Positions 1-61,498 of a DNA stretch of 64,000 nt are shown here, one piece after another. The position numbers and the translations under genes are program-made. The stretch lies in sequence record NC_019406.1; one strand, given 5' to 3'. The notes under the pieces were generated by a model. It was not told the DNA's origin. It did no database searches and worked only from the letters and a program-made list of their open reading frames with translations. Numbering within the stretch: the stretch's first letter is position 1; the number at the start of each line of letters is the position of its first letter.

Positions 1-354
1 GGCCCCGACCCCGAGCGCTCATCTACATTTGGTGCCAATTTCGACATCACCCCATAGATGTGGGGCAAATCTCGGGCTCTAGACACCTGGGATTCTGCGG
101 GGCGCGTTAACCATGTTTGTTTACGTTACTGCGCGCCCGACCGGTAACCCTAATTCGTAGTCTTAAAATCCCCGAGTTTACCTGGAGTATGGCCCAGCAC
201 TACCCGGTCAGACTGCTCCGGTATGGCTGCGAGATCAGCGCGTCGACAGCCTCCTCGACCTGTCTGCGCGCTGACAGCCGCCGGCGCCTGCCCTCAAACC
301 TACGGACCTCCGTCACCAAACCTACGGAGTCCGCCGATCGAGGTCCGCAGGTTG

Positions 355-490
355 GGGACCCTTCAAAATTCACCCTGGGGACCCTTCGAAATTCATGGGC
401 CAGGGACCCTGGAAATTTTACCGGGGGACCCTTCGAAATTCTGCCTCCGGGGACCCTGGGAAATTCTGGAGCCAGGGACCCTGGAAAATT
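355..490 (+). repeat. Six copies of GGGACCCT-N3-AAATT-like 16-mer, period 22-25 bp
   Basis: Copies start at 355, 378, 403, 425, 450, 475. Confidence 0.9.
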
Positions 491-739
491 CACCCAGATT
501 TCCGGCCCGAATCGCCTCCCATTTAAGCCCAACCCTCAGATCGGCAGAAATATCGGCGATTTTACCCCATTTTGGGCCTAAAATCCCTTAAAAATCAGCC
601 TTTTAGCTCCATTTCAACATCGGCAGCGCCCGCTCCGCGCCCTGCCTGACTGTAGTCATCCTTCAACGCAAATGTGACTCACCGACCTGTCGCCACAATT
701 CCTCCCATCTTTTCAACATGTTACAGAGTCACATCTCAA

Positions 740-978: not shown

Positions 979-1374
979 TCGGCCCAGACACATCCCTCCT
1001 CTCCTGTCAATCCCACCTACCTGCGACCTCCTCGCAGTCCTGAATTGGCAGAAACGAGACTGTGTCGCCGGCGCCGCGCCCCTGCGTTATCGTGCCACGC
1101 TTGCCAGCCCGCCAGGATCGTGCCCTACTGTCTCTCGGGAGCCGGTCTCCCTGGCCTGCACGTCGTAGACGCTAGTCGGTACCCCCTCACCCAGCCCGAG
1201 GGCATTCCAGACGCTAGTCCGCCGCTCGCAGGCGGCTTCGATCGCTCTCTCCCAAGGCGATCGAGGTCAGGCCGGCTCCTATCCCACCTCCAGGAGCCCA
1301 AAACAGGGTCAGGAGCCCGGATTAGCCCGATTCTGGGCTAAAAACGCCTCAAATCGGCCGAAAAACACGACAAA

Positions 1375-1516
1375 ACGCCATTTCATTCGCAAAACTCGAC
1401 GCGATTCCATTAATTTGACGCGACGCCATTCCATTTCGCCGACTCGACATGACGCGATTCCATTCCGGCGACTCGACATGACGCCATTTCATTTTCTTGA
1501 CGCGACGCCATTCCAT
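1375..1516 (+). repeat. Six copies of ACGC(C/G)ATT(C/T)CAT
   Basis: Starts 1375, 1399, 1423, 1452, 1481, 1505 (spacing 24/24/29/29/24). Confidence 0.9.
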
Positions 1517-1547
1517 CCCGCCGGCTCCAGACCACCGCCCAGGTCGA

Positions 1548-1786
1548 TTAGGGTAAACGTCAGGCCCGTTAACCACGTTCGTTAGGGTTACCGGTCCAGG
1601 TAAGGTTACGAATTAGGGTAAACAGGGCGTTAGGGTTAATGCCCCGTTAGGGTTAACACCGCGATGCACACTAACACTACTACTGTTAGGGTTAACGCCA
1701 CTGTTAGGGTTACGAATTAGGGTTAACGCGCCCGGCCGGTATTACTCGGCACTACCCGGTAATACCTAATGGCCATTAGGGTTAAC
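1548..1786 (+). repeat. Nine copies of TTAGGGT(T/A)A(A)C
   Basis: Starts 1548, 1582, 1613, 1630, 1647, 1686, 1704, 1717, 1776. Confidence 0.9.
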
Positions 1787-1794
1787 GCCCTGCG

Positions 1795-1868
1795 AGCGCG
1801 CAGCCCCGCCGTTGCGCCCCTACGGTTCGAAGAGCCCGGCCCCTGCCGGGTCCCGCCCGGCTACATCT
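1795..1868 (-). ncRNA. Candidate ~80-nt structured RNA, copy A
   Basis: Lies downstream of the minus-strand promoter at 1881-1904. Core GGGCTCTTCGAACCGTAGGGGCGCAACGGCGGGGCTGCGCG is shared with copies B-D. No ORF. Confidence 0.6.
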
Positions 1869-1931
1869 ACACCTTAGCCTCTATTTCTTAACAAACCGTA
1901 AACGCCGGGCAGTTTCCCGCCCGGCGCCGGC

Positions 1932-2186
1932 TTAGTCGTCAGATTGCGCGGCTAGGCCATAATCGCAGTCATCCCACAACCAAGAGAGGATGTAATCCGG
2001 GTTCTTGTTCGGGTGCGCGGCCTCTTGCGCCTCTAGCTCTTCGCGGAAGGTCGCCGCGTCGTCACCTTGGAGCCAAACAGACGTTTGGGCGATCTTGTTT
2101 CGCAGGGTGTACGCCGCGCCGTTGCCATAGCTGTCTAGGGCGTAACGGGTACCTTCCATAATCCGAATCGGGCCTGAAAAAGCCAT
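1932..2186 (-). CDS. Hypothetical early protein (84 aa)
   Basis: ORF with upstream hairpin and AAGGTG SD-like site. Confidence 0.7.
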   Translation of the reverse strand: MAFSGPIRIMEGTRYALDSYGNGAAYTLRNKIAQTSVWLQGDDAATFREELEAQEAAHPNKNPDYILSWLWDDCDYGLAAQSDD

Positions 2187-2292
2187 GGATTCACCTTGGA
2201 GAGCGCGCCGGGCGTCTCCGCCCGGCGCTAGGGGTTACCAAAGCGCCCAAAGGATGAGCGCGGCGAGAATGAGGGGCGTTAGCTTGATCAAG

Positions 2293-2619
2293 CTACAGCC
2301 CCAAGGTGTGCGGGACGCCCCAAACGGCCGCCGCGTTGCGCGGGCGGGCGTCCAGAGCGAGGCGCCACCGGTAGAGGTATTCTCGCGCCGCCGCTTGTTC
2401 GGGCGTCCGGCCGTGTCCGATTCGCTCCGCCATGCGGGTTGCGGTATCGGCGCCGGGAACCTTACGAAGAGGCCCGACGATCATAGCTGCGAACAATTCG
2501 CAAGCTTGCTTGATGTCGTTGGCGCGGTCGTTCTGGACGTATCGCAGGAACTGCACAAGGGTCAGGCGAATAGGGCGCCCGAACTCGCGCGATTGCTGCA
2601 CGTCAGATGCAGGGTACAT
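2293..2619 (-). CDS. Hypothetical early protein (108 aa)
   Basis: Downstream of promoter 2680-2702 (-), GAGG SD. Confidence 0.75.
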   Translation of the reverse strand: MYPASDVQQSREFGRPIRLTLVQFLRYVQNDRANDIKQACELFAAMIVGPLRKVPGADTATRMAERIGHGRTPEQAAAREYLYRWRLALDARPRNAAAVWGVPHTLGL

Positions 2620-2789
2620 GATGCCTCACGATGTCAAAGAGCGCGGCGGGGTTGTCCGCCGACCCGCTCAATCTCGCATCTATTTCTTAACAAGACGTTA
2701 ACGGCCGAATCTTTTTCGTGTTTACGATTTGTTAAGAAATCGGCTCTAGTGTCTCACGTGTCGGCGCATCCCGCGCCCTGGAGTCTCGC

Positions 2790-2996
2790 ATGTCTCAAGA
2801 CAGCATGAAGATACCCCGCGACACGTTCGCCGTGTTCTGGTCCCTGCCCGGTGACGTGATGCAGTTTCACGGCGACATGAAACGGGCGCTGTATCCGACC
2901 GCCCGCGCCGCCGCTGAAGCCTTCCGCGCCATGTTCCCCCGCAACGTGGTCAAGAGCGTCCGCGACGCGTCCGGCCGCTTCCTGGCCTTCAAGTAG
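2790..2996 (+). CDS. Hypothetical early protein (68 aa)
   Basis: Promoter + GGCGCATCCCGCGCC hairpin + GGAG SD. Confidence 0.8.
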   Translation: MSQDSMKIPRDTFAVFWSLPGDVMQFHGDMKRALYPTARAAAEAFRAMFPRNVVKSVRDASGRFLAFK

Positions 2997-3005
2997 GAGT
3001 CGCCC

Positions 3006-3296
3006 GTGTCGCACGTCTATGACATCGAATATACCGACACGTTCGCCGGAGAGGCGAATTACTCATGGGTTCGCCGGGCAACCGTGACCATGCCGGAGCT
3101 AACCCATTATGGGTATGACGGCGGGACGAACTACGCCAAGGCGAACAAGGTGTTTAATCGCGAACTCATGAAGCGCGCCAAGGCCGCCATGGGCTTGACG
3201 GGCGTTAAGGGCGTCACCTCGACGCACGGCGACACCCTGGAGTTTCGCCCCTACAGGTCCGCGACGGTCCTTTTCGCCAACTATCGCGACGCCTAA
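3006..3296 (+). CDS. Hypothetical early protein (96 aa)
   Basis: AGGAG SD, GTG start, phage-like codon use. Confidence 0.8.
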   Translation: MSHVYDIEYTDTFAGEANYSWVRRATVTMPELTHYGYDGGTNYAKANKVFNRELMKRAKAAMGLTGVKGVTSTHGDTLEFRPYRSATVLFANYRDA

Positions 3297-3354
3297 GGCG
3301 GAGCCCGGCGCCCTCCAGCGCCGGGCGAACGCTTGCCCAGCCCGTTAACCATGT

Positions 3355-3430
3355 TTTTGAAAAACGCGCATCCCCGCCGTAGCGCCCCTACGGTTCGAAG
3401 AGCCCGGCCCCGCCGGTCCCGCCGGCTACA
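3355..3430 (-). ncRNA. Candidate ~80-nt structured RNA, copy B
   Basis: Downstream of promoter 3449-3469 (-), same core sequence, ends in a T-run. Confidence 0.6.
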
Positions 3431-3557
3431 GGTCCAATCTAGCGCCCATTCCTTAACAAACCGTAAACGCGATAAAGAATCTCGCGTTTACCTTTTGTTA
3501 AGAAATAGGGTCTAGGGTGTCTTTGTGGCGGGACGGTCCCGCCCTGGAGATGAACCG

Positions 3558-3956
3558 ATGAACGAAGCTCAGACCAACGCCGCCGCCTCGATCCGCGCGA
3601 CCGGTGAAACCATTCTGGCCAAGATCGAAGCCGCCCGCGCCAGCGTCGCCGCGAACCCGCACCTCGCCGGGCAATTCTACCTTGTCGGCGACACGGGCGG
3701 CGGACTCGTCGTCAACACCGATGGCGGCGCCGGCTACCGCTTCGGCGGCATGTTCTCCGAAACGGTGATCGCGTTCCCCGCCGACGCCAAGGAAGAGGCT
3801 TACCGCCTCGCCGCGCACTGGAATCGCCGCCTCTCGCCTAAGGAACGGGCCGCCCGCTGCACCGTCACCGTCCAGACCCGCGAGGAGGCTTGGACCGCCC
3901 TCGAAAAGTCCTGGCGCGAGACGTTCGCCATGATCGAAGCCGCCAAGGTCGCCTAA
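3558..3956 (+). CDS. Hypothetical early protein (132 aa)
   Basis: Promoter + GGCGGGACGGTCCCGCC hairpin + GGAG; start moved to ATG 3558. Confidence 0.8.
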   Translation: MNEAQTNAAASIRATGETILAKIEAARASVAANPHLAGQFYLVGDTGGGLVVNTDGGAGYRFGGMFSETVIAFPADAKEEAYRLAAHWNRRLSPKERAARCTVTVQTREEAWTALEKSWRETFAMIEAAKVA

Positions 3957-4057
3957 GGCGAGCGCCCCGGCCGAAAAAGCCGGGGCGTTTACCTCTTGTT
4001 AAGAAATATCCTCTAGGTTCATCTTGTCGGCGCATCCCGCGCCCTGGAGCAAGTCAC

Positions 4058-4438
4058 ATGGCTTATCGTGGAAAGTACCCCGAGCGCGTGAAATCGTGCG
4101 TCGAAATCGGCCCGAACGATCACATGCTTAAAGGCCCCCTGGCCTTGATGCTCCTGAACGACGGCCGCCGCTTCCACATCCGGACCCGGAACAAGTACCA
4201 CGCCGGTTACGCGATTTGCGGCGAGGAATTCGCCCAGATCAAGCGCGGCGGCTGGTACGACATCGAGCCGGCGCCGGAAGAGCCCAAGCCCGCCCGCAAG
4301 CCTCGCCTGTATTTCGAATATTACGGCGTCACTGTCTGGCGCAACACGTCGCCGGGCTTCGCCCTCCGCTGGAGCGGCGGCGGGTACGCGGCCGATACCC
4401 AAGAGGGAATCCGCCGGCTGATCCGTGAGGGGCGATGA
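4058..4438 (+). CDS. Hypothetical early protein (126 aa)
   Basis: Cassette leader + GGAG; start moved to ATG 4058. Confidence 0.8.
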   Translation: MAYRGKYPERVKSCVEIGPNDHMLKGPLALMLLNDGRRFHIRTRNKYHAGYAICGEEFAQIKRGGWYDIEPAPEEPKPARKPRLYFEYYGVTVWRNTSPGFALRWSGGGYAADTQEGIRRLIREGR

Positions 4439-4722
4439 GCAACGCCGCCCGCGCGGAACGCTGGATAGGCCACGTTGAGAAAGGAGTCGGCCGCGCCCTC
4501 GAAAGGGCGGCGCGGTCCCGGCCCTTCGCTATCGAGGCGGAGGCCGCCCCGTTCCTGGCGACCTTCAAGCGGCAGGCCGCCGGACATGCGCAGCGCGCCC
4601 AGACCCTGGCCCTAGCTGGCGACCGCGCCGGCGCCTTGGTCGAGGCGCGACACGCGGAACGGTGCGCCGCGAACCACGCGAGAATTTTGGAGGCCGTCGA
4701 CTCCGTCTTAACCGCTTGTTAA
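4435..4722 (+). CDS. Hypothetical Ala-rich early protein (95 aa)
   Basis: ATGA overlap with upstream gene; stop lies inside the next promoter box. Confidence 0.7.
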   Translation: MSNAARAERWIGHVEKGVGRALERAARSRPFAIEAEAAPFLATFKRQAAGHAQRAQTLALAGDRAGALVEARHAERCAANHARILEAVDSVLTAC

Positions 4723-4778
4723 GCAATAGGCGGTAGGTTGCTCTTGTGGCGGGACGGTCCCGCCCTGGAGAACCTGAG

Positions 4779-5045
4779 ATGAGCACTCTTCCCGTTCGGA
4801 CCCTGGAGCAAATCGGCCATCTGACTTGGGTGGCCACGCGCCGGGGCGGCGGCTTCGATGCCGCGTTCGCCGATAGTGACGACGCCATCCGCCACGCCAT
4901 GGCGACCGGCGGCGCCCTAGGTCACACCCTGCTAGGCTGGATTGACATGTTCAGCCCTTCCGCGACGTTCGAAGCGAACCAAGCGCAGGTTGTGGCCTTC
5001 CTTGATCGCGGCGACGAATTCGACCGCGTGATGAGCGAAGCCTAA
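4779..5045 (+). CDS. Hypothetical early protein (88 aa)
   Basis: Cassette leader + GGAG. Confidence 0.75.
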   Translation: MSTLPVRTLEQIGHLTWVATRRGGGFDAAFADSDDAIRHAMATGGALGHTLLGWIDMFSPSATFEANQAQVVAFLDRGDEFDRVMSEA

Positions 5046-5114
5046 GGCGAGCGCCCCGGCCGAAAAGCCGGGGCGTTTACCTCTTGTTAAGAAATAGCCT
5101 CTAAGGTGATCACG

Positions 5115-5185
5115 TACCCGGCGGGACCGGGCGGGCCGGGCTCTTCGAACCGTAGGGGCGCAACGGCGGGGCTGCGCGTTTTTCA
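5115..5185 (+). ncRNA. Candidate ~80-nt structured RNA, copy C
   Basis: Downstream of promoter 5076-5108, same core, ends in TTTTT. Confidence 0.6.
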
Positions 5186-5278
5186 GCGCCCCGAAAAAGT
5201 TTCCCGCGTTAACTTCTTGTTAAGAAATAGGCGGTAGGTTGCTCTTGTGGCGGGACGGTCCCGCCGGAGAAAAACGAC

Positions 5279-5716
5279 ATGACGACGCAAGCCGCCCTCG
5301 CCGCCCGCCTGGACCGCGCCGCCCGGATCATCCGGGGCGAAGTCCCGGCCTCCAAGCGCAAAGAGCGCAAGGCCCGCCGCGCGTTTCAGCGCGCCCTCGC
5401 CGGAATGGACATTCCGACCTATGTCGCGTGGCTGAACGATCCGGCCGACACCCTCCGCCTCACGGATGACGTGGAGCATTGGGCGTCGTTCGGGATTACG
5501 AACGCCCTTCAACTCGGCGACTATCTGAACGGGTGCGTTCGCCGGGAAATCGAAAAGGACTCGCGCTGGAGCGGGTACGAAGACGAGGCCGACGACTTCG
5601 GCGGCTTCGGGGGCGATGATGACGGCGAGGGCTACAGCTTCGACCGCGACCGCGCCGCAGGGATCGCCGCCGACAAGGCCAAGCGCGACGCCATGCACGA
5701 AGACACCCCTTTTTAA
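5279..5716 (+). CDS. Hypothetical early protein (145 aa, acidic C-terminus)
   Basis: Cassette leader + GGAG. Confidence 0.8.
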   Translation: MTTQAALAARLDRAARIIRGEVPASKRKERKARRAFQRALAGMDIPTYVAWLNDPADTLRLTDDVEHWASFGITNALQLGDYLNGCVRREIEKDSRWSGYEDEADDFGGFGGDDDGEGYSFDRDRAAGIAADKAKRDAMHEDTPF

Positions 5717-5767
5717 CCCCCTAGGGCGGCGGATCGGCCGCCGCCCGCCTCTCTGGAGCGCAAGCCC

Positions 5768-6202
5768 ATGACCCGCCACATTCTCGCCCTCACGACTCCG
5801 GAATATGACGCCGTTCTAGCGGCCGTCCGCGTCGTCTCGTTCGCCCTGGAACGCGGCCAAGAAACCGCCGACGTAGCCGGCGACTTTCTCGACATCGCGA
5901 CCAATGGCGGCGAACACGCTTACGCCAGCCCGGCCGACATCGGCGCCCGTCTGGGCGACCTCGCCGACTCGTGGCAAGCGAACCCGGACACGCCCGGAAC
6001 CGGGGCGAACCCGGTGCAAGTCATCATCGCTTCGCACGGCGGGGACGTGATCGCCGCCGCCCGTGGTCTGGGCTACATCATCCGCAAGGATGCGGCCGGG
6101 CGCTACTATCCCGCCCAAGACCTCGAATCGGCGTCGCGCCACGGCTACCACGACACCCGCGAAGCCGCCGCCCGCCTTGTCGTGGAAAGCGCTTTTCTTT
6201 AA
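5768..6202 (+). CDS. Hypothetical early protein (144 aa)
   Basis: GGGCGGCGGATCGGCCGCCGCCC leader + GGAG. Confidence 0.8.
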   Translation: MTRHILALTTPEYDAVLAAVRVVSFALERGQETADVAGDFLDIATNGGEHAYASPADIGARLGDLADSWQANPDTPGTGANPVQVIIASHGGDVIAAARGLGYIIRKDAAGRYYPAQDLESASRHGYHDTREAAARLVVESAFL

Positions 6203-6283
6203 CCTCTTGTTAAGAAATAGAGGCTAGAAGGAAAGCACGGGCGGCGGATCGGCCGCCGCCCACATCCCCTGGAGCGCAAGCCC

Positions 6284-6864
6284 ATGTCGCAACGCTACCG
6301 TCTCGCCGACCAAATCAAGGTTGCGAACGACGTTTCAAAGCTGCTCTATGCAGCCGCCGAAGCGCTGGAGCCGAACAATCAGAACGTGACGCCGCAAGCG
6401 CGCGCCGAACTCCGCGAAAGCTGATCGGCGCGAGCGCCGGCGCCCTGACGCACAAGCCGCCGGCTGAAGTCCTGAAAACCCTCGTTTGGGTTGTCGAGTT
6501 GGCGCAAGATCGCGCCACCGGCTCGGACTTTAATTCGTCTCAAGAGGCCCTGGACGAACACGACGCCCTAGCCTTCGTCGCCGACTGGCTGGAGGCGCAA
6601 GGCGAAGACGTGAGCCCGATTCGGATGGCGCAACCGTCCGCCGAACGCCTCGCGGCCCTTCGCCAATTCGCCGCCGACGAGGAAGCCGAGCGCGCCGCCC
6701 TGGAGCGCACGCAAGGGCGATTCGTCGTCGTTCACGGTGTCGCCGGTTCGCCCATGGGCGACCGCCTCCCCGGCCGCTTCGAAACCTACGACGAGGCCGA
6801 AGACGCGGCGGAGCCCTACCGCAAGCCGGGGACGTGGGCCTATGTTGACGAGTTAGCCTCGTGA
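6284..6864 (+). pseudogene. Early gene split by an apparent 1-nt deletion near 6417-6420 (46 aa + ~147 aa)
   Basis: ATG 6284 after a full cassette leader stops at TGA 6424, while the -1 frame continues open to 6864. Confidence 0.55.
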
Positions 6865-7033
6865 GCGCGCGCCCCTACGTCACAACGGCCCGTTGCCCCG
6901 ATGGCGTCTTTTACGGCGCCGCCTGGAGGGCGGACGGAACCCTAATCGCCATGTCAGAACCCAAGGCTTCGCGCTCCGCCGCGCGTCGCTGGGCTCTGGC
7001 GCAACTCTAAACCCCTCAGGACAAGGAGTCCGC

Positions 7034-7270
7034 ATGACCACGACCGACAAGACCCCGACCACGCGCCGCAAGCTGGCGACCGTGCAACGCGAGCAAGACG
7101 CCAAGGCCGCGCCCAAGAAAGCGCCCGTCAAGGCCAAGGCCGCCCCGGCTCCGAAGGAAGCCGCGCCCAAGGCCACCCGCAAGACCAAGACCCCGCCGCC
7201 GGCCGCGCCGCGTCCGAAGGTCCGGGGCCTGAAAGCCGCCCTGTTCGGCGGCGCGTTCAACCGCCTGTAA
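7034..7270 (+). CDS. Lys/Ala/Pro-rich basic protein, histone-H1-like composition (78 aa)
   Basis: AAGGAG SD; KAAPKKAPVKAKAAPAPK repeats. Confidence 0.75.
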   Translation: MTTTDKTPTTRRKLATVQREQDAKAAPKKAPVKAKAAPAPKEAAPKATRKTKTPPPAAPRPKVRGLKAALFGGAFNRL

Positions 7271-7364
7271 AAACTTCCGGGCGTTTACCTCTTGTTAAGA
7301 AATAGGAGGTAGGTTCTAGTCACGGGCGGCGGATCGGCCGCCGCCCAAACTCACGGGAGGCCAC

Positions 7365-8066
7365 ATGGCCCGCAAACTGACTCTCTCGCTGCTCTCGAAC
7401 CCCGATTTGAGCATGGCGAACGTTACGACCGCCTCGCAACGTATCGAGGACTGGTCGACGGTCCTTTACGGTGACGAGGACGGCCGGGGCGAAACGGCTG
7501 ATATCGTCATGCCACCGGTCACGTACGGCGCCATCAATGACCACGCCGCCGACCTGCTGACCGAAGCGCAAAAGCGCACCGCCGACCGCTCGCCGGATCG
7601 TGAGGCGCCCCGCGACCTCGCCGACCGTTTCGAGGAAACCGAAGGTTTCCACGAATGGAAAGAATCGTTTTCGCCGATGATGAATTTCGTTTGGCCGGTG
7701 TGCCTGCCCTATCGCACCGACGCGGAACAAGTCGCCGCCCTGCTGCAAGAATTCTGCCCCGTCATGACTCTGGTCAGCTTCGGCGATGGCTCGCCGTTCT
7801 GCGAAGAGGAACACGGCTTCGCCCTCTCGGGCGGCGGAATGAACCTCGCCGACCAAATCGCGACGGCCTATCTCTGCGCCGGCGTCGTCCCGCCCTCCGA
7901 ACTGCTGGAATCGCTCGCCGGCGTCATCGGCGATTATCAGCGGAACAAGGTCGGGCCGGTCCTGCGCAAGGCCTATCAGCGGGCCGCCGAATACCACGCG
8001 CACCGGGTCAAGGCGATCCGCCGCGAAGCCGCCCGCGTCTTCGCCAAGCCCAAGACCGAAGGCTAA
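7365..8066 (+). CDS. Hypothetical early protein (233 aa)
   Basis: Cassette leader + GGAGG SD. Confidence 0.85.
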   Translation: MARKLTLSLLSNPDLSMANVTTASQRIEDWSTVLYGDEDGRGETADIVMPPVTYGAINDHAADLLTEAQKRTADRSPDREAPRDLADRFEETEGFHEWKESFSPMMNFVWPVCLPYRTDAEQVAALLQEFCPVMTLVSFGDGSPFCEEEHGFALSGGGMNLADQIATAYLCAGVVPPSELLESLAGVIGDYQRNKVGPVLRKAYQRAAEYHAHRVKAIRREAARVFAKPKTEG

Positions 8067-8129
8067 GCCCTGGAGGCCCGGCGCACCCCGCCGGGCCTTT
8101 AGCGTGTCTGGCGCGTTAACCATGTTCCG

Positions 8130-8203
8130 AAATTGCGGGCAGGTTCGCCGTAGTGCCCCTGCCGTCCGAAGAGCCCCGCCGCGCCCGATCCTGCCGGGCC
8201 ATG
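8130..8203 (-). ncRNA. Candidate ~80-nt structured RNA, copy D (diverged, compensatory changes)
   Basis: Downstream of promoter 8219-8242 (-); core GGGCTCTTCGGACGGCAGGGGCACTACGGCGAACCTGCCCG. Confidence 0.55.
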
Positions 8204-8330
8204 GGTACACCCTAGCCCCTATTCCTTAACAAACCGTAAACGTGAAAAAGAATCTCGCGTTAACCTCTTGTTAAGAAATAGACGGTAGGTTCATCCCTGC
8301 CGGCGCATCCCGCGCCCCTGGAGAACGCAC

Positions 8331-61165: not shown

Positions 61166-61498
61166 ATTTTTCTTTGACAGTATTCTTGACACCCGTCTCG
61201 AACTGTGAGAGAAGCAAATCCTCAACGGGCCACAGCGCCCACGTTTTCGCCTTGGATCAGAAGATGACCTTCTCGACGCATAAGCCGAGCACTTTGAAGC
61301 CCGCCACCGGCGCGGCCTCGCTCGCCCATGCGTCCCTTCTGACGCCGGCGACGAGCAAGCCGTCGCTATCACGGTCGCTCTAGGACTCCAGTAGTCCTCT
61401 TCAGAAGCGGCCGGATCACCGCCGCTTCTGCTCTCCACGCTTACACCCCAAAGCACAGCAGACGCGGCCCCTCCAACTCGGGGTTCGTTAACCATCAT

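Follow-up and report, generated by a model that had tools for sequence, protein, structure and literature searches.

The window analysed here, bases 1-64000 of Caulobacter phage CcrColossus (NC_019406/JX100810; 100% identity, identical coordinates), carries four copies, A to D, of a short noncoding element. Our findings place these copies in a family of real early transcription units of CbK-like phages, which are devoid of an open reading frame (ORF) and defined by two invariant sequence blocks. The family appears to be undescribed so far; no account of it was found in the papers on CbK genomics (PMC3556154), on CtrA-regulated phage promoters (PMC9437464) or on phiCbK RNA-seq, nor in the other literature searched. 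Our best explanation, which we hold tentatively and as a possibility short of probable, is that the element is an RNA that engages host Nus factors, either as a decoy or by making transcription Rho-resistant. All four copies sit inside the ~16.7-kb direct terminal repeat of CcrColossus (PMC3556154), where every gene is annotated as hypothetical and no annotation covers any of the four. With no mismatch allowed, GGGCTCTTCGRAC occurs in the window only at the four block 1 positions of table 1, in each copy 30-35 nt 3' of the promoter motif TTGTTAAGRAATRG, and the copies can be aligned with one another over ~75 nt plus the promoter. Their conserved core overlaps no gene, has no ATG, GTG or TTG in its transcribed part and holds no conserved ORF with a start on either strand. 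An earlier note on this DNA, made from the letters alone, had proposed four promoter-linked noncoding copies; all were recovered in their places and without an ORF, and the terminal U-runs that it had read in copies B and C are real as well, UUUUU ending both.

Ten further copies were recovered by BLAST, nhmmer and a covariance model: four in CcrPW, syntenic with those of CcrColossus, two in RBC57, one in each of the single-copy carriers Ccr2, BL64 and BL57, and a divergent one in Brevundimonas phage Bajun. The resulting 14 copies represent 13 distinct sequences, and all 14 stand behind an intact promoter, in the same orientation relative to it. Wider searches returned no more members. Two pattern scans of IMG/VR gave CcrColossus and CcrPW only, plus one chance match; the 12 matches in GTDB (one genome per species) agreed in the pattern letters only; the 24 matches in JGI metagenomes all fell within unrelated high-GC coding sequence; BLAST with the Bajun copy gave no additional phages; and the covariance model, searched against the window and eight loci, found its 14 training copies only. 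In Rfam 15 there was no match over any copy at the gathering threshold or at E<=10, with only transfer RNAs (tRNAs) reaching threshold in the window, in agreement with the note's statement that no known RNA family could be recognised. The element was not found in phiCbK and Swift, of which the first 13 kb were searched, and phiCbK RNA-seq therefore cannot inform on it. In phiCbK (locus L026, ~2100-2290), five tandem ~22-nt repeats (GCCGRGGCGGTCCCTGGCCYYC) precede a GTTAAC array and occupy the place that the A-type promoter and element take in RBC57 and BL57.

Mean pairwise identity, computed over the 14 copies and, separately, for Bajun against the rest, is concentrated in the two blocks. Block 1 (GGGCUCUUCGAAC, 13 nt) reaches 0.99 in both comparisons and block 2 (AGGGGCRCWACGGCG, 15 nt) 0.94 and 0.90, respectively; the corresponding values are 0.86 and 0.52 for the CtrA box/-35, 0.73 and 0.55 for the -10, 0.75 and 0.27 for the 5' hairpin P1, and ~0.4 and 0.28-0.39 for the flanks. 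Both blocks are better conserved than the element's own promoter, and the contrast between block and flank is also seen among the four CcrColossus paralogues. Blocks that stay 94-99% identical while P1 and the flanks diverge are thus the signature of sequence-specific recognition. An antisense frame through both blocks (…PAVAPLRFEEPGP…) is open, but its start is missing in most copies and it is frame-shifted in copy D; we rejected it as a gene and judge it to be an accident of the high GC content. Substitutions are few among all 14 copies, and a number of them would leave the residue encoded by this frame unchanged or replace it conservatively (R to K in Bajun).

The element promoters belong to a larger early set. 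The motif TTGTTAAGRAATRG is matched 22 times in the window, where 0.17 matches would be expected, each time within 1.8-16.8 kb; 18 of these early promoters lead into a 5' hairpin, a Shine-Dalgarno (SD) sequence and an ATG, and the remaining four into the element. In CbK-like phages, CtrA-regulated promoters are intergenic, lie in the direct terminal repeat and bear a CtrA box of the TTAA-N7-TTAA type (PMC9437464); accordingly placed, TTTA/TTAA-N7-TTAA overlaps the -35 in four of four element promoters. That of copy A joins a CtrA-box-like TTTA-N7-TTAA over the -35 to a Caulobacter-type -10, which is the architecture of the phiCbK gp018 promoter. In phiCbK, CtrA binds and activates promoters of this type, as shown for gp005 and gp018 only (PMC9437464). 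By homology to these two, the element promoters would be CtrA-activated, so that the units should fire at once in infected swarmer or predivisional cells, which are rich in CtrA. A GC hairpin equivalent to P1 starts 2-5 nt after the predicted start at 20 of the 22 early promoters, including 18 messenger RNA (mRNA) leaders; P1 is therefore a general trait of early transcripts and not specific to the element. These hairpins fall into few sequence families (GGCGGGACGGTCCCGCC, GGCGCATCCCGCGCC and GGGCGGCGGATCGGCCGCCGCCC; examples at 2644-2661(-), 3527-3543(+) and 6241-6261(+)), and probably represent a general, 5'-cap-like leader design that stabilises early transcripts.

On present evidence, the element is defined by primary sequence and not by structure. 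The earlier note had described a structured RNA defined by covarying stems. Its P1 does covary, with 97% of cells paired and five of six pairs changed on both sides (13 distinct sequences), yet this is the generic hairpin of the early transcripts. For P2, the exchange of C-G for G-C that copy D shows is genuine, and U.G gives way to C-G in D and BL57; the stem is 84.6% paired, however, and pair 44-67 is broken in 5 of the 13 sequences. In the inner C-UACG-G hairpin, pair 52-59 is lost in 3/13 with no compensation. An alternative hairpin, CCGUAG/CUACGG, which G.U-rich pairs between GGGCUCU and the 3' G-run would lengthen, is interrupted at 46-54 in 5/13. Minimum free energy z-scores of the sense strand range from -1.7 to +1.8 against dinucleotide shuffles, and the element RNA is therefore no more stable than such shuffles. 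With generic P1 alone covarying, P2 failing in many homologues and no thermodynamic signal, the stems do not define the element. The conserved segment had also been called single-stranded, against a predicted probability of being unpaired for block 1 of 0.13-0.41 in the full RNA, and of 0.23-0.80 in the nascent RNA, such predictions being unreliable for GC-rich RNA. Thirteen near-identical sequences have no power to settle the fold.

What block 1 does resemble is boxA, which is recognised by NusB-S10 (NusE) on nascent rrn and lambda nut transcripts. The signal, N-G-C-U-C-Y-U-U, comprises 8 nt of single-stranded RNA and is read almost wholly by NusB; its U8 is held at the NusB-S10 (NusE) interface, G2, C5 and U6 are intolerant of transversions, and lambda boxA has A8, yet is functional (PMC3177189). 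Block 1 reads G-G-C-U-C-U-U-C in 14/14 copies, corresponding to the boxA core at seven of eight positions, with positions 1-7 kept, including G2, C5 and U6. It begins about 25-30 nt into the predicted transcript and 6-9 nt past the 5' hairpin, that is, early in the nascent transcript and beside a small hairpin, as a boxA does. Consensus boxA is UGCUCUUUAACA in E. coli and AUGAUCUUUGAAA in B. subtilis, whose rrn operons have a small 5' hairpin at their start and boxA directly next (PMC13753749), and GYTCTTTAANA has served as the gammaproteobacterial search consensus (PMC5725501). In the rrn leaders of four Alphaproteobacteria (chromid records), boxA takes the form YUYUUUGACAW, and a G-rich GUGGGCGRCGG-like block follows ~25 nt beyond it in four of four; in Methylobacterium the order is hairpin GCCGGGUUCGCCCGGC, GC, GCUCUUUGACAAG. 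To YUYUUUGACAW the leader of the phage gene gp002 is an exact match and the element an 8/12 match, the consensus being that of other Alphaproteobacteria and perhaps not that of Caulobacter. No Caulobacterales rrn was found in PLSDB. With a host rrn boxA/boxC similar to GGCUCUUCGAAC or AGGGGCRCWACGGCG, the case for mimicry would be strong; were the host boxA GCUCUUUGACA, with no counterpart of block 2, the 7/8 match alone would remain. Elsewhere in the window, the alphaproteobacterial boxA consensus is also satisfied by TTTCTTTGACA at 61169-61179(+), which lies in the tRNA cluster ~320 nt upstream of tRNA-Pro(CGG) and could equally be a TTGACA -35 element.

The gp002 leader links this signal to the early region. 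Exact GCTCTTTGACA occurs once in 64 kb, in that leader, which is ordered promoter, 5' hairpin, C, boxA, SD, ATG (table 1). Leaders of the same type are present in CcrPW, BL64 and Swift (boxA at L002 ~2907-2917(-), L005 3243-3253(+) and L027 2681-2691(+)), where the hairpins covary and the downstream small genes differ. To judge from these exact matches, an alphaproteobacterial-type boxA is used in the early region, at a position equivalent to that of block 1, which points to an early phage gene controlled by Nus factors, as suhB is in E. coli. Alignment of the gp002 leader with the element core gives GCTCTT(T/C)GA-A(T/C)CGT-AGG, with a score of 9 and, judged by shuffles, p about 0.005, which suggests that the element is a paralogue of such a leader, with the boxA-like part kept and the gene lost.

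How a Nus-engaging RNA could be built from these parts may be outlined as follows. Each unit consists of a promoter of the CtrA-box/sigma-73 type, as at the other 18 early promoters; a 5' GC hairpin, probably a stabiliser of the 5' end, in the place held by boxB in rrn leaders; two blocks invariant in primary sequence, the first a putative one-position variant of boxA; and, in B and C types, a weak terminator, which A and D types lack. In the mode that we favour, abundant short RNAs would act in trans and vie with the rrn leaders of the host for NusB-S10, aiding host takeover. Four units per repeat amount to eight per virion DNA. Alternatively, the terminator-free A and D copies might act in cis, rendering leftward untranslated transcription Rho-resistant. 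The unit's own promoter, its 5' hairpin, the U-runs of B and C, its occurrence in either orientation and the four units per repeat favour a trans-acting RNA that accumulates. We give a rather low probability to the trans-decoy version taken by itself, in which the RNA is a natural sponge of the Nus complex of the host; here, CtrA-driven, stabilised RNAs with a tuned boxA variant and a second recognition block would take up NusB-S10 early in swarmer cells. Friedman et al. in 1990 reportedly saw NusB titrated in E. coli by over-transcribed boxA on plasmid constructs, and we know of no natural Nus-factor sponge. Were the sponge real, rrn antitermination and ribosome synthesis would collapse, or Nus factors would be re-routed to phage transcripts, and the element would be the first free-standing boxA RNA in nature to act in trans. 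The host-protein decoy suggested by the earlier note is compatible with all this, NusB-S10 now standing as its candidate partner.

Several points weigh against an engagement with Nus factors. Position 8 of block 1 is C and not U in all 14 copies, where a decoy would be expected to have the high-affinity U8; element positions 10-12 (AAC) are unlike the alphaproteobacterial CAW; and the boxA-like block is predicted to be mostly base-paired in the full RNA. The 7-mer match was found post hoc among many motifs and is weaker than its nominal probability, and when the Bajun copy is aligned with the gp002 leader, the score falls short of significance (p=0.15). The boxA of the Caulobacter host is itself extrapolated from other orders, and in every element-bearing phage we infer from sequence the transcription of the units, the binding of Nus factors and the effect on host or phage. 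Since phiCbK and Swift are without it, the element is dispensable. Three of the four copies are directed against gene flow, which counts against antitermination in cis.

Comparison with known systems shows both kinship and distance. With rrn leaders and lambda nut the element has in common a location close to the promoter in the nascent transcript, a small hairpin with a linear, pyrimidine-rich block after it, and the boxA agreement of that block, whose deviation at position 8 parallels the A8 of lambda; with alphaproteobacterial rrn leaders it also shares a subsequent G-rich block (GUGGGCGRCGG in the latter). It differs in its invariant C8, in having no operon downstream in three of four copies and, in B and C, a U-run at once after, and in being multi-copy and free-standing, with no N-like protein identified and Nus binding only predicted. 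The boxA in the 5' untranslated region of E. coli and Salmonella suhB, an instance outside rrn and lambda that serves Nus-factor autoregulation (Baniulyte et al. 2017, PMC5725501), has the arrangement of the phage gp002 leader, namely boxA in a short leader near the ribosome binding site (RBS). The element is similar to that leader, but is itself without RBS, start codon or gene. Protein-titrating RNAs, such as 6S RNA, CsrB/RsmZ and the phage RNA anti-CRISPRs, are small, abundant, transcribed from their own promoter and imitate the nucleic acid that a host protein naturally binds, which is the mode proposed for the element; they differ from it in that no sequence or structural relation exists (Rfam negative). 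HK022 put and lambda OOP are, like the element, short phage early-region RNAs just 3' of early promoters; the former acts on RNA polymerase elongation, and the latter is convergent with an upstream gene, as are copies B and D. Yet put has a defined two-stem structure and acts only in cis, whereas the element has no such supported fold, and OOP works by antisense overlap, whereas the element core overlaps no gene.

The same anatomy of own promoter, 5' hairpin and, in B and C, a hairpin with U-run could belong to a trans-acting small RNA (sRNA) that base-pairs with host or phage mRNAs through GGGCUCUUCGAAC as a seed, anti-SD pairing included, with hairpin and U-tail as stabilisers; the invariant 13-nt block and a sporadic presence in the host-takeover region, as typical for accessory regulators, would suit it too. 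We consider such an sRNA possible, if rather unlikely: invariant blocks of 13 and 15 nt are longer than a seed requires, block 1 is not predicted to be accessible, no U-tail is present in the A and D types, and complementarity in the window is at chance (with <=2 mismatches, 5.7 matches would be expected and 8 occur, of which four are the copies themselves). The anti-SD role that the earlier note saw in CUCUUC found no specific support; the hexamer is a poor anti-SD for the CUGGAG/GGAG sites of the phage and is better read as part of the boxA-like GGCUCUUC. Blocks invariant in primary sequence, no supported fold and a high copy number would also be expected of a decoy, sponge or aptamer for some other partner, be it a host defence sensor, a nuclease, another RNA-binding protein or a phage protein such as those of the gp004 family, the boxA likeness then being coincidental. 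For gp004 it speaks that a homologue is present in five of five Caulobacter phages having a B-type copy; however, homologues also occur in Agrobacterium, Pseudomonas and Stenotrophomonas phages, in which BLAST found no element, and copies A, C and D do not adjoin gp004. As no partner is identifiable, with neighbouring proteins devoid of Pfam, PADLOC or PDB assignments, we regard this as unlikely.

Two further explanations dispense with a functional RNA ligand, and we find each of them improbable. In one, the DNA itself is the functional entity, as a protein site at early promoters or through leftward transcription or an R-loop activating the repeat arrays (a possible ori/pac). The A-type copies of CcrColossus, CcrPW, RBC57, BL57 and Bajun all run directly into GTTAAC-containing arrays, the transcript is G-rich over a C-rich template, and the flanks of B and D contain GTTAACCATG, which we take to be a CtrA half-site/SciP-type motif. 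On the other hand, the orientation relative to the promoter is fixed in 14/14 and P1 pairing is kept by compensatory changes, which together indicate the transcript rather than the DNA; the blocks are neither palindromic nor iterated, and copies B, C and D do not adjoin arrays. The idea of origin or array activation is weakened in particular because the arrays of phiCbK and Swift persist without promoter or element. In the other explanation, the copies are non-functional relics, orphaned boxA-type mRNA leaders that lost their gene and spread with promoter cassettes, and owe their conservation to recent transfer or gene conversion. This would account for the likeness to the gp002-type leader, for the patchy distribution, with phiCbK and Swift lacking the element, and for a module of gp004 and copy B that shows ~85% identity between genera with otherwise dissimilar repeats. 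Relics should decay evenly, however, whereas promoter spacers, P1 and flanks diverge around blocks that keep 94-99% identity, paralogues and Bajun included, and the promoter is intact in all 14 copies.

Work on the Caulobacter cell-cycle model has CbK-like phages as its standard phages, yet hardly anything is annotated in their early terminal-repeat regions. Within those repeats the element, which is not a gene, ranks among the most conserved sequences. If the element is a boxA-type signal, it would tie phage takeover to Nus/rRNA antitermination beyond the lambdoid phages, and in a new format that is ORF-less, multi-copy and CtrA-timed. Even without the Nus link, it provides a clean case of an undescribed phage noncoding RNA conserved in primary sequence.

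Table 1. Positions in the window of the four units, the gp002 leader and the left-end repeat arrays
Feature	Position	Strand	Details
Copy A promoter	1871..1904	-	CGTTTAC-N3-TTGTTAAGAAATAG-N2-GCTAAGGT; from motif match and alignment
Copy A RNA	1795-1864	-	P1 1845-1861; block 1 (boxA-like) GGGCUCUUCGAAC 1825-1837
Copy A RNA, 3' part		-	block 2 AGGGGCGCAACGGCG 1807-1821; tail GGGCUGCGCG 1797-1806
Copy B promoter	3436..3469	-	back-to-back with gp005 promoter at 3495(+)
Copy B RNA	3360-3429	-	P1 3412-3426; block 1 (boxA-like) 3393-3405; block 2 3375-3389; UUUUU 3360-3364
Copy C promoter	5074..5107	+	immediately 3' of gp008 terminator hairpin (5049-5078)
Copy C RNA	5114-5183	+	P1 5117-5131; block 1 (boxA-like) 5138-5150; block 2 5154-5168; UUUUU 5179-5183
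Copy D promoter	8209..8242	-	back-to-back with gp015 promoter at 8268(+)
Copy D RNA	~8131-8202	-	P1 8183-8199; block 1 GGGCUCUUCGGAC 8164-8176; block 2 8146-8160; tail AACCUGCCCG 8136-8145
gp002 leader	2617..2693	-	promoter 2680-2693; 5' hairpin CGGCGGACAACCCCGCCG 2644-2661; boxA GCUCUUUGACA 2632-2642; SD GAGG; ATG 2617-2619
GGGGACCCTKSRAAATTC array	354-496		x~6
GACGCSATTYCATT units	1374-1527		
TTAGGGTTAAC array	1547-1790		x~9

The copies differ in their surroundings (table 1). Copy A is located after the boxA-led gp002-gp001 operon and directed into the 1.8-kb noncoding left end; having no U-run, it reads on into the TTAGGGTTAAC array. Copy B is convergent with gp004, copy C is followed next by the gp009 promoter, at 5217, and copy D, the most divergent of the four and without a clear U-run, is convergent with gp014. 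Other identities tried for the element were rejected: a tRNA-like or transfer-messenger RNA-like element (ARAGORN gives only 15 tRNAs, at 59-63 kb), a G-quadruplex (Col_D, PW_A and PW_D have fewer than the four G-tracts needed, as judged by eye from the alignment), a CRISPR-repeat mimic (no CRISPR direct-repeat match on the copies), and anticodon-loop or T-arm mimicry around UUCGAA (needed stems absent, by inspection only).

For gp001-gp009 and gp014 there was no Pfam, PHROG function, PADLOC or PDB assignment. The gp004 gene (3006-3296(+)) encodes 96 amino acids and belongs to PHROG 22729, for which no function was found; the module that it forms with copy B is shared, at the DNA identity given above, with BL64, Ccr2 and RBC57, and its protein homologues in Agrobacterium, Pseudomonas and Stenotrophomonas phages are 55-68% identical. 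The left 1.9 kb (1-1930) contains no annotated genes and three repeat arrays (table 1). Analogous GTTAACCYTAAC and GACGTCAAAACGC arrays are present in phiCbK, Swift, BL57 and RBC57, and the region may be an ori/pac or a CtrA/SciP-binding region. Copies B and D are flanked on their 3' side by CGTTAACCATGTT (TTAACCAT, presumably a CtrA half-site/SciP-type motif) at 3343-3356 and 8113-8150; CGTTAACCATGTT is also seen at 107-118 and 1567-1576, reappears at the genome end and is repeated many times beyond the Bajun copy (L007 8050-8180). On the + strand, the flank of copy D (GTTAACCATGTTCCGAAATTGCGGGCAGGTT) resembles an entire early promoter aimed antisense into that copy.

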